Assembly: GCF_001194135.2 (NCBI RefSeq)
Contig: NC_068985.1
Location: 25,652,740-25,716,739, forward strand
Reading direction: 5' to 3'
DNA length: 64,000 bases
From: Octopus bimaculoides
Taxonomy: Eukaryota
Shown: piece after piece, positions 1,073 through 28,100 of the stretch
Layout: the number at the start of each line of letters is the position of its first letter
Position numbering within the stretch: position 1 is the stretch's first letter
The notes under the pieces: generated by a model
The model's input: only the letters and a program-made list of their open reading frames with translations
The model's database searches: none
Told to the model about the DNA's origin: nothing
Translations under genes and position numbers: made by a program

Positions 1073-1198
1073 CACATAAACATTTGTATTTTGATCATTC
1101 TGAAGTGGATATTTCAAAAATATTTCACCAGTGTCAGGATTTATAGAAAAGGTGCTTGAAGCTTTATTGAGGAAAAATTTCAACTGATTGTTTGGTGC
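1073..1198 (-). CDS. Cadherin exon 33, short type (126 nt, 0-0)
   Basis: [42 protein letters not shown]; ttttcAG / GTAAG. Confidence 0.9.
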
Positions 1199-4100
1199 CT
1201 GAAAAAGTAATGGAATATATATTTATGGCTTTTAGTAAGGAATTTTCATTGATGAGAGTAATATTCCATATGATCAACACAAGTTAGATATTAGCTTAAA
1301 AACAAATTAGAAATATTTCTTTATTGAATAATATTGCCTTTAAGGTTATTAGAAAAGAATATAATTTGAAATAATTTAACCACTGAGTCTATAGGGGATG
1401 CTAGAACCTACGGATGTGTAGAATTATGAAACTAACTAATTATAAGACCATGGATTTAACAAACTACCTTCTCTTCTATCCTCCAACTGATACAATGAAT
1501 TATGGAAGTCACTAAAATGTAAGACTATTGAATATATCGATGAATCTTATGACTTCTGACTTATTAGTCCATTATTTTTTCATTTTAGCATTTTCCCTTT
1601 ATTAAACAAAATGTAGTTTTCAATAAGACACATGTAGCACTCTCATTTCAATATATTTAATGCTAAACTAAATACATATACTGAGTGATTAATAAAGAAA
1701 AATAATGAAGGAATGTACATAGAATTTTAAATTGCATGTTTGTTATATTTTAAATACAGAATACTCTACAATATCATGAGATGTCATTAATTTACCTATT
1801 TTAGCATCAAGAGTAAAATTTTTATTTATATTTTCTTATTTTGTATTTTCTTAATGAATTAAAATGCATAACTTACCCCAGTATCCGCATCTGTAGCTTG
1901 TACCTGATAAAGAGGTTGGCTAATACTTTGGCTTTCTTTTCTACATATTTTAGGAGATTTATCAGAAGTGATGATAGGAGAATGCAGATTTCTTGATACT
2001 GAAACAGTCACAACAGCAAATGCACTTTTGGGTGGTTGCCCTCCATCAATGGCTTTGACAAAAATCTAAGAATAAAAGTAAACAAATCAAAATTGGGTCA
2101 GTTATAGAAAGTAATAGTAAACAAGGAATGTGTTAAGATTATCATCTTAAAATAAATACAAACCTATAATCATATGATAATCTCATTTAGAAATATGAGT
2201 TAATAATTAAGCCCCTTCATTTGTTTTGTCCTTTTATTGTTTTTGTCAATAAAACATTGAAAAAAAGGGATGTATGCATATACTATATGGTTCTATGACA
2301 ACTAACGCCTAATAGTTTGAACATTATGAACATTTATAAATTATTTTAAAACTCTTACTTGATAGGTACTCTGTGATGTTGTTTGAATTGCTCTCTTCAA
2401 AGTTATTAATCCAGTGTCTGAATCTATGGCAAAGTAATTCTTTGCCTCATTATTTCCTTCTATACTGTAAGTGATTAAATTAAATGGTGCCTGAAAAGAT
2501 AGTCACATAAACTTGTGTTATTATGTAAACTTCTTTCAAAACAAACAAAAAAACACATGTCATAATGGTATTATAATTTGTTGATCATTTAACATTTATT
2601 GAAACATTTCTTTTGTCAACTTTAGACAATAGGTGTAGGCATGGCTGTGTGGTAAGAAGTTCGTTTCCCAGCAAAAGGGATCCAGGTTTGGTCCCACTGC
2701 ATAGCACTTTGGGCTGGTGTCTTCTACCATAGCTTTGGGTCAACCAAAGCCTTGTGACTGGATTTGGTAGATGGAAACTGAAACAAATCTATCATATATA
2801 TATATATATATATATAAAATTATAATATAGGGTAACTAAGAGATACTGCCACACTGAAAATAGCAGTCAAATCTTGACTCTAAACCACAATAAATGTTCA
2901 TATAGCATAAAGACTGAAGACGAAGACAAAATAAACTAGCAAACATAAAGTAGCAAATAGTTTGCTAGTTTATTTTGTCTTCGCTCTTTGTGCTATATGA
3001 GGTAATGAATGCCCCAGCATGGCCACAGTTCAATGAGTGAAGCAAGTAAAAAATAAAAAAAATAAAAAACAAAGCAAAGAAAAATCAAAACACTTACATT
3101 AGTATCCTGATCAGTAGCTAAAACTTGGGCAATTTGTTCACCAACTTTTGCTGTTGAGCTGATACTTTTTTCAATATATTTCTCCTGAAAATTTGGTGCG
3201 AAATTATTTCTCAGTACCTGAATGGTAACTGCAGCATCAGAAGTAGAGGAACGTGGAGGATTTCCTTGGTCTTGGGCTGCTATTGTAAGCTGAAATAAAA
3301 AGATTATTTAAAAATGAATTTTGTTTTGTATCAGTGGACATCTTTCAACTTTTTCTGTCTAAAAGGGTTTTCAACTCAATATTTAGATACTATTATTTAT
3401 AGCCTTATGTGCTTCAAGATTCATTGGTAAAAAAAAACGCAATTATCTCACATTCTCTTGAAAGTTTCTAAAATTCTTGTGACATTTTGAATCTTAATTT
3501 AATTGATTTTTTTATGAATTAAAATAGAGATTTAAGATTCAATAACATCTTTTTTGTATTCTAATTAATTTCACATCAAAACATGTTCACTATTGCTCAA
3601 TTATTTTGACATCAATATCTAATATCCTAAAAGATCTAATTTATGAGAACTTGTAATGTTTCAAGGTAAGTGTTGGATATTTCTTTCATAGTTTCATTGA
3701 AATATATTACAATTTTCTTTATGTTTATTACAGAATTATAAAAATTTCACTTACTCTGTAGGAGTTATCACTTTCTCCAGAAATGCTTTGCATTAAAGAA
3801 ATAGCACCAGTCACTGGGTTTATATAAAATTTGTCAGATTTAAACGATGGTTTAATCGAATAAGAAATTACATTGTTGGGGCTCTGTGAATAAAGAAAAC
3901 ACAACATAAAAGTATTAATATTTTTTAAAAGGCTTCTTAGAATAATTATTATAACATTAAAACTATAAACATATTATAAAAAGAGTTTTTTAAATATTTT
4001 AAATTTAACACACCAACATATTCTACATTGGAAGCCATAAGAGTGTTTGGAGTACAGTATTGAGAAATCATAATTTACATACAAGGTATTTTTTCACTAT

Positions 4101-25100: not shown

Positions 25101-28100
25101 CATAAGTGTTATGTGTTTGAAATCTGAAATTTAGTGTGATGTGAATCCATTTGAAATTTAGTGTAATATGAATCTATTTGCAATCACTCCCTAATCAGTG
25201 AAACATTTCAATACTTACATTATTATCTGCATCAGTAGCCTTCACTACAGCAATCACTTCATTTACAGACTTGTTCTCCTGAATGGTCACTGGTGCAATA
25301 TTTTGGCAAACAGGAGAGGCATTGTTGCGTATGACATTGACAGTGAGAATTTTTGATTGAGACAATGGTGCAATACCTCGATCAGTGCCAGTGAGAGTAA
25401 TCTAAAAAATAAGCAAATACCCATTGTTATAGAAAAATCTACAAACTTGACAAACAATAAGAGAGTATAAATAGCAGGGAGTCAAACCCATACCTACATG
25501 CGTGCACAGACTCACATAATCTAAGTCCCATTACCATGTAATATCCTACAATTTACAAATACTTCATACAGATTATCATCTGAGTAACACTCCCAAGATT
25601 TCTCCAACTATTTTACTTCCCTGGTAACTGGTTACTTTAGCTACAACTAGTTACATTAGCTGTATGTGGTCAGTGGTTGAACATATAAACACCTACATCA
25701 TTACATTATCTTATGACTATCAAATGCATTTTACTAAGATAGAAACCATTTTACTAGGACACTTAAAATGAAACAAAAAATGGATTATATAGAAATATTA
25801 TTTCGTATGCTCTCTCACTCATAAGAAAAAGACCTCTCATAATAATTCTTTCTACTATAGGCACAAGGCCTGAAATTTTGCAGGGTATACTAGTTGATTA
25901 TTTTGATCAAGTCTTTCACTGGTACTTAATTTATCAACCTCGAGAAAATGAAAGGCAAAGTCAATCTCAATGGAATTTGAACTCAGAATGTAAAGACAGA
26001 TGAAATACCATTAAGCATTTTGCCTGGCATGCTAACGATTCTACCAGCTCACTGTCTTAAGACCTCTCATAATAACCCTGTCTACTATAAGCGCATGGCC
26101 TGAAATTCTGGAGGAGGAAGATAGTTGATGACATCAATCCCAGTACTCTAACTGGTACTTATTTTATCAACCCTGAAAGGATGAAAGGTAAAGTCAACCT
26201 CAGCAGAATTTGAACTCTGAACATAGTGGCAGACGAAATACTGCTCAGCATTTTGCCCAGCATGCTAACGATTCTGCCAGCTCACCACCTTAATAATTAT
26301 AATAATAATAACAGTCACCAGTCCAATTTCCCCCAAAACCATTTTTCCTTTCCTTTTTGTCTTTTAGCTGGAATATACTCATGTACAAATGTGGTCAGTA
26401 CTCAAGTATATGTGACAATTTGTTATTAAACACAAATGTTTAGAATAACATTCTGTATATCTTATTTATTCTTTTTTCTTTCATTTGTTTCAGTCATTTG
26501 ACTGTGGCCATGCTGGTGCACCACCTTGAAGAATTTTAGTTGAACAAATCAACTACAGGACTTATTTTCTATGCCTCGTACTTACTCTATTAATCTGTTT
26601 TGCCAAACCACTAAGTTACAGAGACATAAACACACCATCACCAATTGTCAAGCAGTGATGGGGGGACAAATACAAACACACACACACACACATATATATA
26701 TGACAGGCCTCTTTCAGTTTCCATGTACCAAATCAACTCACAAGGCTTTAACTGCTCAAGGCTACAGTAGAAGACACTTGCCCAAGGTGCCATGCAGTGG
26801 AACTGAACCCAGAACCATGTGGTTGGGAAGCAAGCTTCTTACCACACAGCCATGCCTGAACCTTTAGTGCGGATAAATTGTAGAAAGCCACAACACTGTG
26901 GTGTTCATCTTGAGAAAGCATCTCTTGGGCTAAAAACACAGAAGTTTATCTGTAACAGACAGAAAGTGTCCAGCAGTGGCAGTGAAATTGCTAAATCTGG
27001 ATTCCTCCATCTTTGTACATCATCCATAGCAAGTATCCACTTTCAACTAACAAATGCTTAGACAAATTTTGTCTTTACTGATATAGAAAAATAGTCGTTA
27101 ACAAATCACTGGTGTCACAAATAGCCAGCAGGATGGGTAAAACTTCATTATTAGCAAAGAAAGACCCTCATATTTCATTGAGTAAATGGGAGAGGACTGG
27201 TTAATTGAACCTTCAGCTACACTTGTGGCCATCTTCAGAGTAAAGAAGTAAATAAGAATTAATATAACTGCGAGTCATCTTAATCAGTAATATGAATCTC
27301 ACTAATAATAAATTATTAGTAATAATAAATTATTACAACTCACTAATAATTTTGGTTGAAAGGGATACATAACTTGATCTCACTTCTATGAGTCATCAGT
27401 AGTCATGGGATGGCATGCATGCCTACATACATACAGACATACACACACTTATACATATGTACATTATGTCAATGTCTTATCTATTAGAGGGATTTCTTAT
27501 TTAAGGAGAGATTTTTGTGTAATAATTACAAAGGGTCATCTATTGATCTTCCTCATTTAATGGACATTTTATAAAGCATTATTCTTTGGTTACTTGTTGA
27601 AGTAGTTCTTCAATAATTTGGATTTACAGAAGTCCTCAGGCTATTTTGTTAACTTTATCAAATCTCTATAAACGTCTGATAATTGTTTACTTACTTTATA
27701 GGAAGTGTTTGAATCACTTGTGAGTGGCTTACTAATACCAACATTTCCAGTTATTGGGTTCAGGTAAAACAATTCCGTTCCTCCACTTGGAGTAATGGAA
27801 GAAATCCGAAAAACTACATCACTGTTTAATGTATTCTGCAAAAAGGAAAAAACAACAATAAACCATACAAAAATTGAAAAAAAACTAGAAGATAATAAAA
27901 AATAGATTGCAAACAAGTAAAAAAGGAAACAGAGTACCACCACAAGGTCTAGTTCCTGTTGCAGTTTGGTGGCTTGTGTGCCTCAATGACCCTGAGAGCT
28001 ATGCCAGCAGAGCACAATTTCCTGGTAGGGCTCCCATGTTGGACAGGTTCAAAGGATAGAGGCTGGATTAATATGGACCACCTCTTCCCAGAGGTAAAAA

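Follow-up and report, generated by a model that had tools for sequence, protein, structure and literature searches.

The analysed stretch, referred to below as the window, comprises 64,000 nucleotides (nt) of the Octopus bimaculoides genome (NCBI RefSeq assembly GCF_001194135.2, contig NC_068985.1, positions 25,652,740 to 25,716,739), and its minus strand carries part of a giant cadherin gene. Between positions 27835 and 1073, 17 phase-0 exons were found that encode nine cadherin repeats and the eight linkers between them, all of the form RNxxxP (hereinafter, RN linkers). Both borders had been given in a first-pass annotation made from the sequence alone, and they coincide exactly with the acceptor of the first exon and the donor of the last. 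All 17 exons are open and divisible by three in length; a pyrimidine tract leads into the AG acceptor of each, and the donors resemble GT(A/G)AGT. The spliced product is 893 amino acids long and was attributed to the Pfam Cadherin family (PF00028) in nine stretches with E = 1e-120. The gene extends past both ends of the window, and at least 15 of its extracellular cadherin repeats (ECs) lie inside it (nine RN repeats plus about six upstream linkers). The nine RN repeats open a much longer array in a giant single-pass cadherin. The N-terminal ~240 residues fall either beyond the window or into the assembly gap at 60979–61925.

The exons belong to two types, eight "A" exons strictly alternating with nine "B" exons. 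The A exons (180–192 nt) encode the F and G strands of one repeat with the xDxG motif, the RN linker, and the A and B strands of the next repeat with the DxD motif, and RNxxxP occupies the same alignment column in 8/8 of them. The B exons (126–141 nt) encode strands C–E, where the LDRE motif is located in canonical cadherins. The readable sequence of the region was scanned with hidden Markov models (HMMs) of both exon types, and each exon was found once with none extra. Across the six frames of the window RNxxxP occurs 16 times, eight of these in frame at the shared column, and canonical giant cadherins have it in only 14 of 823 linkers, so the pattern is not a matter of chance.

The eight linkers listed in the first-pass annotation were all present on the minus strand (Table 1). 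They had been described as one residue shorter than the canonical linker, and HMMER alignments to solved cadherins as well as two tandem alignments agreed with this (x-R-N-x-x-x-P versus x-D-x-N-D-N-x-P). As had been stated, LDxE is missing from all nine B exons, and DxD and xDxG are intact in every readable repeat of the window. The A-strand Glu, described there as usually kept, is absent from only one of the eight A exons. The former LDRE motif has turned into L-x-x-D/E and is not simply gone: its third position is still acidic in 7/9 B exons (TSD, TQD, AAD, LSD, TKE, SGE and QND).

Table 1. Exons of the RN-type cadherin gene and assembly gaps in the window. Positions are those of the window; for linkers, the start of the Arg codon is given.
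Feature	Position	Strand	Characteristics
Exon B0	27695..27835	-	C-E strands of the first RN-type repeat; begins NTLNSD; LTSD replaces LDRE; 141 nt; identical in P0124
Exon A1	25219..25401	-	xDxG = TDRG; linker RNNASP (25329); Glu in IQEN; DxD = TDAD
Exon B1	24461..24589	-	LTQD replaces LDRE
Exon A2	23292..23471	-	Linker RNLNKP (23405)
Exon B2	22167..22298	-	Not in P0124; its repeat has 44% identity with the abalone repeat in the equivalent position
Exon A3	16975..17163	-	Linker RNNQPP (17082); not in P0124
Exon B3	16069..16200	-	LSTT; Glu69 position without acid
Exon A4	14292..14477	-	Linker RNLNSP (14405)
Exon B4	12279..12407	-	LLSD
Exon A5	11115..11297	-	Linker RNLQTP (11219)
Exon B5	9370..9510	-	LTKE
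Exon A6	7038..7223	-	Linker RNKNNP (7151)
Exon B6	3755..3883	-	ISGE; not in P0124
Exon A7	3098..3289	-	Linker RNNFAP (3211); ISST, Ser instead of A-strand Glu
Exon B7	2359..2490	-	IQTT
Exon A8	1877..2065	-	Linker RNLHSP (1993)
Exon B8	1073..1198	-	LQND; not in P0124; gene runs on beyond position 1
Upstream exon	30834..30950	-	VL|DINDNTP, the last canonical linker, interrupted by a phase-0 intron; then A/B strands and ATDAD opening the first RN-type repeat; identical to the start of P0124
Upstream canonical exon	35581..35787	-	LDYE and KDG present; ends ITVNVL
Further upstream cadherin-like exons (56711-38217)	~51772-51644, 50437-50303, 47402-47223, 45271-45159, 45029-44956, 42230-42137, 40679-40551, 39614-39526, ~38496-38300	-	All borders approximate; mixed phases; some linkers non-canonical, e.g. 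LDLPDSIP
Upstream exon	59645..59800	-	PCDH15/Cad99C-type EC2-3 junction: DGDD linker and Cys loop (C-x5-C)
Assembly gap	12810..12819		10 N; intron A4-B4; exact 62-bp direct duplicate on both flanks (12748-12881)
Assembly gap	5257..5266		Intron A6-B6, among microsatellites and dispersed repeats
Assembly gap	5813..6335		523 N; intron A6-B6, among microsatellites and dispersed repeats

An automatic model of this gene already exists as the UniParc entry P0124, in which the shared exons are identical. This model omits four exons (B2, A3, B6 and B8), each of which has good splice sites and is in phase 0. Skipping of a lone B exon would break the cadherin fold, and the omissions therefore look like annotation errors; regulated skipping of whole exon pairs is possible, all exons being phase 0. 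P0124 continues for ~1,140 residues (about 11 ECs) past the 3' end of the window and contains more RN linkers there.

Three assembly gaps are located within 27835–1073, all of them in introns of the 17-exon model, and their true lengths do not affect the reading frame because all introns are phase 0. The gap in intron A4–B4 probably represents two overlapping contig ends that were left unmerged. In intron A6–B6, the shorter gap is situated between (GA/GATA)n and (CA)n runs and the 523-N gap between dispersed repeats; the readable flanks of both contain no cadherin exon. A hidden B + A exon pair inside the 523-N gap is unlikely, since the repeat-by-repeat register relative to the abalone orthologue does not shift across this intron, although the differences in identity there are small.

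To evaluate the distribution of the RN linkers, a homology search was performed, and RN counts were compared among the matches. RN-linker proteins were found in abalone, ark clam, oyster, soft-shell clam, sea slug and octopus; they contain 2–12 RNxxxP motifs each and are nearly devoid of DxNDNxP and LDRE, and none of the 110 other matches had this combination. An exhaustive HMMER search of 1.84 billion representative sequences, in which a linker-centred profile of the eight A-exon translations was used, gave 16,984 matches, the best 150 of which were all giant cadherins. Motif counts among these best 150 were bimodal: 11 proteins contained 8–23 RNxxxP motifs and 0–5 canonical linkers, and the remainder contained 11–44 canonical linkers and 0–5 RNxxxP motifs. 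One of the 11 is P0124, the existing model of the octopus gene; those with names belong to Haliotis, Patella, Potamilus and Bulinus, to the brachiopod Lingula anatina and to the nemertean Tubulanus polymorphus. The first-pass annotation had pointed to similar linkers in mollusc proteins named Fat-like and had proposed a search of this kind with an HMM of the RN repeats; this was correct, and the search extended the giant RN-array proteins from molluscs to a brachiopod and a nemertean. A word-index search with a 39-unit RN profile gave no match among 411 candidates of an index of limited reach.

The window repeats matched those of abalone along the diagonal with 33–47% identity (off the diagonal, roughly 20–35%), while the repeats within the window are only 21–48% identical to one another. 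This ordered match, together with the low identity of paralogous repeats, indicates that the RN array is older than the split between cephalopods and gastropods. As judged from these comparisons, the array is an old trait of a family and not a local oddity. It might instead be supposed that recent tandem duplication, decay of a pseudogene or faulty assembly produced the array, with the uniform linker reflecting mere identity of copies. The uniformity of the exon pairs, the presence of three gaps and the identical units of the Lingula and Bulinus proteins could be read this way. However, such low identity, a positional abalone counterpart for every repeat, 17/17 open exons with intact splice sites and retention of the trait across three phyla leave this explanation almost no credence, and recent duplication and pseudogene were rejected on the basis of the intact exons, the abalone register and the conservation in three phyla.

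Some observations concern single members of the family. The Lingula protein P0218 includes two identical repeats (starts at 832 and 977), and a block of five linkers is present twice in the Bulinus protein P0253; these units are either recent duplications or assembly artefacts. In the first half of the Patella protein P0141, non-RN linkers (RD, RF, GD and RL) alternate with RN linkers, which suggests a two-repeat super-period in the limpet protein. The entry P0273 of EukProt, filed under Piridium sociabile, matched the C-terminus of the family with E = 1.5e-67. Piridium is a parasite of whelks, and P0273 is probably host (mollusc) contamination of a protist transcriptome.

The database names of the RN-array proteins, "protocadherin Fat 4/1-like" or "hypothetical", were assigned automatically. 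If taken at their word, the octopus gene would encode a Fat or Fat-like (Fat4) planar-polarity cadherin, and weak sub-threshold matches to the Pfam family Cadherin_FAT4_N point in the same direction. However, the full-length relatives P0218, P0141, P0161 and P0132 consist of cadherin repeats only (22–31 Pfam stretches), and neither epidermal growth factor (EGF) nor laminin-G domains were found in them using Pfam. Without these modules the "Fat" names fail. In addition, both ends of the protein were found to be PCDH15/Cad99C-like, as described below, and a word-index search of limited reach found no named cadherin with a similar cytoplasmic tail. Fat identity was therefore rejected, and we regard it as hardly tenable.

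The relatives share a C-terminus that consists of a ~130-residue non-EC juxtamembrane domain, a transmembrane (TM) helix and the sequence WSRYK. The cytoplasmic tail that follows is conserved over three phyla and contains the motifs ETQSLxM(F/Y)VPPDE, LGE(I/V)N and NPxY/F; in the Lingula tail, the ETxSL motif occurs three times over. A terminal T-x-L resembling a class-I PDZ ligand was found in three of the five aligned relatives. The C-terminal module was not attributed to any Pfam family, and a word-index search (of limited reach) gave only mollusc fragments, with no named relative. Its best match in the PDB was PCDH15, across the membrane-adjacent domain (MAD12) and the TM helix. Profile–profile comparison (hhalign) with the C-terminus of arthropod Cad99C and fish PCDH15 gave a probability of 99.7% with E = 1.1e-26 over 169 columns. 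An HMM of the MAD only, without the TM helix, matched all six Cad99C proteins (E from 6e-13 to 4e-20), which rules out hydrophobicity of the TM helix as the source of the similarity, and it did not match the CDH23-, Fat-, CELSR- and Dachsous-type proteins collected in this analysis.

The evidence from the N-terminal side lies in the window itself. The exon encoding the EC2–3 junction (Table 1) was aligned with lobster, beetle and mite Cad99C, fish PCDH15 and a complete mussel relative, and it was found to correspond nearly position for position to the EC2–EC3 junction and the Cys loop of Cad99C/PCDH15. DGDDL is the EC2–3 motif of PCDH15 (PMC7547225). The likeness to PCDH15/Cad99C thus includes, in the relatives, a ferredoxin-like MAD that adjoins the TM helix and its WSRYK-type stop-transfer segment as well as the terminal T-x-L resembling a PDZ ligand; in the window, a DGDD-type linker with a Cys loop; and the presence of non-canonical, calcium-poor linkers. 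The RN family differs in having about 30 or more ECs versus 11, in its cytoplasmic motifs (ETQSLxMF/YVPPDE and NPxY/F) and in the linkers themselves, which are of the RN type nearly throughout after the tip, whereas PCDH15/Cad99C have a few assorted non-canonical ones and no RN array. As PCDH15 and Cad99C have eleven ECs and the relatives 22–31 Pfam stretches, the family was not filed as PCDH15 itself. All these characteristics allow us to assign the octopus gene, at the level of sequence, to a lophotrochozoan family of giant cadherins that is related to PCDH15/Cad99C and resembles PCDH15 at its tip and its anchor. The first-pass annotation had called the array a stalk, and the conserved layout agrees with this description: a canonical N-terminal tip, the RN array with 20–30 or more repeats of the one remodelled type, and the membrane-adjacent domain with the TM helix.

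A family-wide profile of the RN repeat was also compared with the single repeats of the known proteins. It scored best on EC9 of Cad99C (64–76 bits versus 5–54 for other repeats), which precedes the known Ca-free EC9–10 linker; in lobster, this linker starts with V-E-R-V. In fish PCDH15 the best scores were obtained for EC5, EC8 and EC9. It is reasonable but unproven that the RN array arose when a repeat of an ancestral PCDH15-like gene, itself already non-canonical, was amplified.

The calcium-binding positions were examined in one repeat HMM alignment of 372 RN-array repeats and 4,144 repeats of canonical giants. In cadherin linkers, Ca2+ is coordinated by the motifs XEX, DXD, DRE, XDX and DXNDN (PMC7547225, PMC8691648). 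The first and second Asp of DxD were found in 93% and 90% of the RN-array repeats (95% each in the canonical ones), and the Asp of xDxG in 91% of both. The position of Asn102 in the linker is occupied by Asn in 82% and Asp in 10% of the RN-array repeats, versus Asn in 64% of the canonical repeats, where the alignment is less reliable. Asp at the position of Asp67 decreased from 74% in the canonical repeats to 8% in the RN array. At the position of Asp103 the RN-array repeats have Leu, Pro, Asn and similar residues with no acid, versus Asp in 54% and Asn in 38% (an alignment shift) of the canonical repeats. The first linker position is Arg in 82% and Lys in 5% of the RN-array repeats, versus Asp in 49% of the canonical ones. 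The A-strand acid (Glu or Asp) was found in 75% versus 92%, and the Glu69 position carries Asp in 40% and Glu in 6% of the RN-array repeats, versus Glu in 75%. The length of the RN linker is invariant in 248 of 250 cases.

Thus the acids that build sites 1 and 2, Asp67, Asp100 and Asp103 (classical-cadherin numbering), are lost together in the RN-array repeats, and 178 of the 207 R(N/D) junctions have the full set of three Asp ligands in the next repeat. This is the pattern of a linker with site 3 only, which lacks DRE and the acids of DXNDN and retains DXD and XDX in the repeat that follows. The coordinated loss of site-1 and site-2 ligands, with those of site 3 retained, had been proposed for the window, and it holds both there and in the 372 repeats of the family; in sequence, RN junctions keep the complete site-3 ligand set, made up of the linker Asn, DxD and the Asp of xDxG. 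The same pattern is present in the solved EC5–6 linker of PCDH15, which binds one Ca2+ at site 3, has no DRE and has the linker PPNNQ, with DXD and XDX kept (PMC7547225). In both cases XEX is weakened, DRE is absent, and the linker Asp is lost but the Asn is kept (PPNNQ versus RNxxx); the RN linker differs in its conserved Arg, in the usual presence of two facing acids and in its uniform repetition.

The same alignment bears on the supposition that RN junctions keep three Ca2+ by means of backbone carbonyls, water, the Asp at the Glu69 position and Asn or Asp of the linker, and so show canonical calcium dependence. There are precedents for such substitution, as PCDH24 EC2–3 uses backbone carbonyls in place of side chains (PMC8691648) and a PCDH15 EC2–3 mutant regained the third ion (PMC7547225). 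We nevertheless consider it very improbable: three aspartates are lost at once, a cationic Arg is placed where sites 1 and 2 would be, and in every solved case quoted in these papers the loss of motifs lowered the occupancy (PMC7547225, PMC8691648).

The presence of Arg or Lys at the first linker position was found to be associated with acids that would face it. The A-strand acid was present in 81% of the repeats with linker Arg/Lys versus 41% of those without (Fisher p = 3.6e-6), the acid at the Glu69 position in 52% versus 26% (p = 0.006), and at least one of the two in 93% versus 56% (p = 2e-7). An acid at the Asp67 position showed no such dependence (11% versus 12%, p = 1). Five control positions belonging to the other junction of the same repeat or to the domain core, namely both Asp of DxD, the Asp of xDxG, Leu68 and Gly86, were not associated with Arg either (p = 0.09–0.48), which rules out general degeneracy of the repeats as the cause.

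The geometry of the junction was modeled using AlphaFold 2 (AF2) for an abalone RN tandem with an alignment of 14 other RN tandems, and a canonical tandem was modeled likewise (14 rows) as a control. The RN model consists of two beta-sandwich ECs with a mean predicted local distance difference test score (pLDDT) of 94.1, a predicted template modelling score (pTM) of 0.78 and pLDDT near 95 in the linker block; the control had a pLDDT of 95.7 and a pTM of 0.77. In a Foldseek comparison with solved EC pairs, the control matched largely the same entries at template modelling scores of 0.80–0.93 and root-mean-square deviations (rmsd) of 1.6–3.5 A, whereas the RN model reached only 0.47–0.56 with an rmsd of 5.9–8.9 A. 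The poor matches include the bent or calcium-poor PCDH15 EC5–7 (6bxu_B, 0.50), PCDH15 EC8–10 and DN-cadherin EC1–4. The modeling predicts a defined, non-canonical arrangement of adjacent repeats with the same confidence as for the canonical control. Structure prediction for tandems had been suggested in the first-pass annotation as a check of its remodelled linker; a confident non-canonical junction was predicted, with no counterpart among solved EC pairs above 0.56.

A defined junction is not the only way to read these data. RN linkers could be flexible hinges with one Ca2+ or none, as in PCDH15 EC5–6 or the Ca-free linkers of DN-cadherin, Fat4 and Dachsous, the Arg only balancing charge or aiding folding, so that the array would be floppy or self-folding and not a defined stalk. 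Flexibility or bending is usual in solved linkers that bind no more than two Ca2+ (PMC7547225; PMC8325961), the ligand pattern is the same as that of PCDH15 EC5–6, and the repeat of Cad99C on which the RN profile scores best stands before a known Ca-free bent linker. A hinge of this kind does not readily account for an Arg conserved in 82% of the repeats, for a linker of nearly constant length, for the specific covariation of the Arg with two facing acids, or for pTM and linker pLDDT values as high as for a rigid canonical pair. Moreover, a joint with fewer ions need not be floppy, as shown by the EC2–3 linker of PCDH24, which has two calcium ions and yet is straight and strong under force (PMC8691648). 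On balance we find flexible hinges unlikely, while allowing them real weight.

The reading that we prefer, and consider probable with some reserve, is that the octopus gene encodes a giant PCDH15/Cad99C-related cadherin in which RN junctions with one calcium and an arginine clamp form a long stalk; we infer the clamp, the number of Ca2+ and the mechanics. According to this reading, each RN junction would bind one Ca2+ at site 3, as in the EC5–6 linker of PCDH15. The side chain of the conserved Arg would occupy the space of sites 1 and 2 and neutralise the A-strand Glu and the Asp remaining at the Glu69 position, and the linker, being one residue shorter, would fix a defined geometry between domains that is unlike the canonical one. 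Twenty to thirty or more such joints could then build a long stalk from a PCDH15-like binding tip to the MAD–TM anchor. Its shape and stiffness would depend on calcium far less than in canonical cadherins, which would suit a long tether outside the cell, such as a tip link or an intermicrovillar link.

Several points weigh against this reading. The Arg–acid contact, the tilt and twist and the occupancy of site 3 are features that we infer from sequences and a model, and AF2 carries no calcium and was run with shallow alignments of 14–15 paralogous tandems. The p-values of the covariation treat repeats related by descent as independent and so overstate their independence; nonetheless, the covariation is the pattern that a salt-bridge or charge-compensation model predicts. 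The clamp cannot be identical at every joint, since 25% of the repeats have no A-strand acid and about half have no acid at the Glu69 position. The solved precedent with site 3 only, PCDH15 EC5–6, is flexible and not rigid (PMC7547225). Finally, the C-terminus of the gene lies outside the window, and its MAD–TM end is deduced from the relatives and from the octopus protein P0063, which is possibly a paralogue.

A bolder version can be given more tentatively, and we lean against it while keeping it in view. Here the RN junction would be a new class of cadherin joint in which Arg replaces two of the three Ca2+ as the clamp and the shortened linker sets a fixed, non-canonical tilt or twist, and 20–70 joints would produce a regular helical or zig-zag superstructure largely independent of calcium, a long tether of the PCDH15 lineage amplified in Lophotrochozoa. 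In that case, the octopus tether might be the giant cadherin reported to be highly expressed in suckers. The latter, with 77 ECs, is attributed to Albertin 2015 and to Wang and Ragsdale 2017. Its high expression in suckers is reported by citing papers, which do not mention its linker chemistry (PMC6339937, PMC6062618). The two have in common that both are giant octopus cadherins, the window gene being clearly very long; no RN protein with 77 ECs was among the best 150 of the 16,984 matches of the profile search.

Mechanics of cadherins is usually explained by three Ca2+ per joint, and the known exceptions are single hinges. Completely or partially Ca-free linkers are described as isolated hinges in DN-cadherin, Fat4/Dachsous, LI-cadherin, PCDH15 and PCDH24 (PMC7547225, PMC8691648, PMC8325961). 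The RN family resembles DN-cadherin, Fat4/Dachsous, LI-cadherin and PCDH24 in the loss of some or all calcium ligands of a linker within an EC array. There, however, the linkers are isolated bend points, whereas here they are the rule (8/8 junctions in the window and 82% family-wide), and over several phyla the family uses one remodelled, Arg-bearing joint for nearly the whole ectodomain. If the proposed mechanism is true, this would be a natural experiment in which a long extracellular filament is built with about one third of the calcium. We found neither a uniform RN-type array nor this lophotrochozoan family in the literature, and the family is apparently undescribed. We rate it as a candidate new cadherin subfamily and linker class inside the PCDH15/Cad99C lineage. 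Dozens of "Fat-like" database entries could accordingly be re-filed as giant relatives of PCDH15/Cad99C, which are tip-link and microvillar cadherins, and the hypothesis that follows from this is that these proteins act as links that bear force on microvilli, cilia or sensory cells. The octopus gene model P0124 should be flagged for its four skipped exons.

Introns of the gene contain open reading frames (ORFs) that resemble remnants of retroelements, located at 49340–49858 (-), 57354–57719 (-), 7921–8391 (+) and 30372–30644 (-). Among them, one match to the Pfam family zf-RVT (E = 5e-6) and one weak match to a PHD finger were found. The ORFs 7921–8391 and 57354–57719 have the motif MLHGSETW in common; the ORF 30372–30644 has a similar look, with neither this motif nor a Pfam match. 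Two other ORFs, 11543–11821 (+) and 12037–12186 (-), share a near-identical stretch and do not match Pfam. The former also contains the sequence APSDYHLF, which we take to resemble the C-terminal part of mariner/Tc1 transposases. A trinucleotide run of ~300 bp at 47418–47729 produces long homopolymeric ORFs in every frame (poly-M, D, I, S and H). The window as a whole is rich in CA/TA/GA microsatellites, and its G+C content is about 34%.

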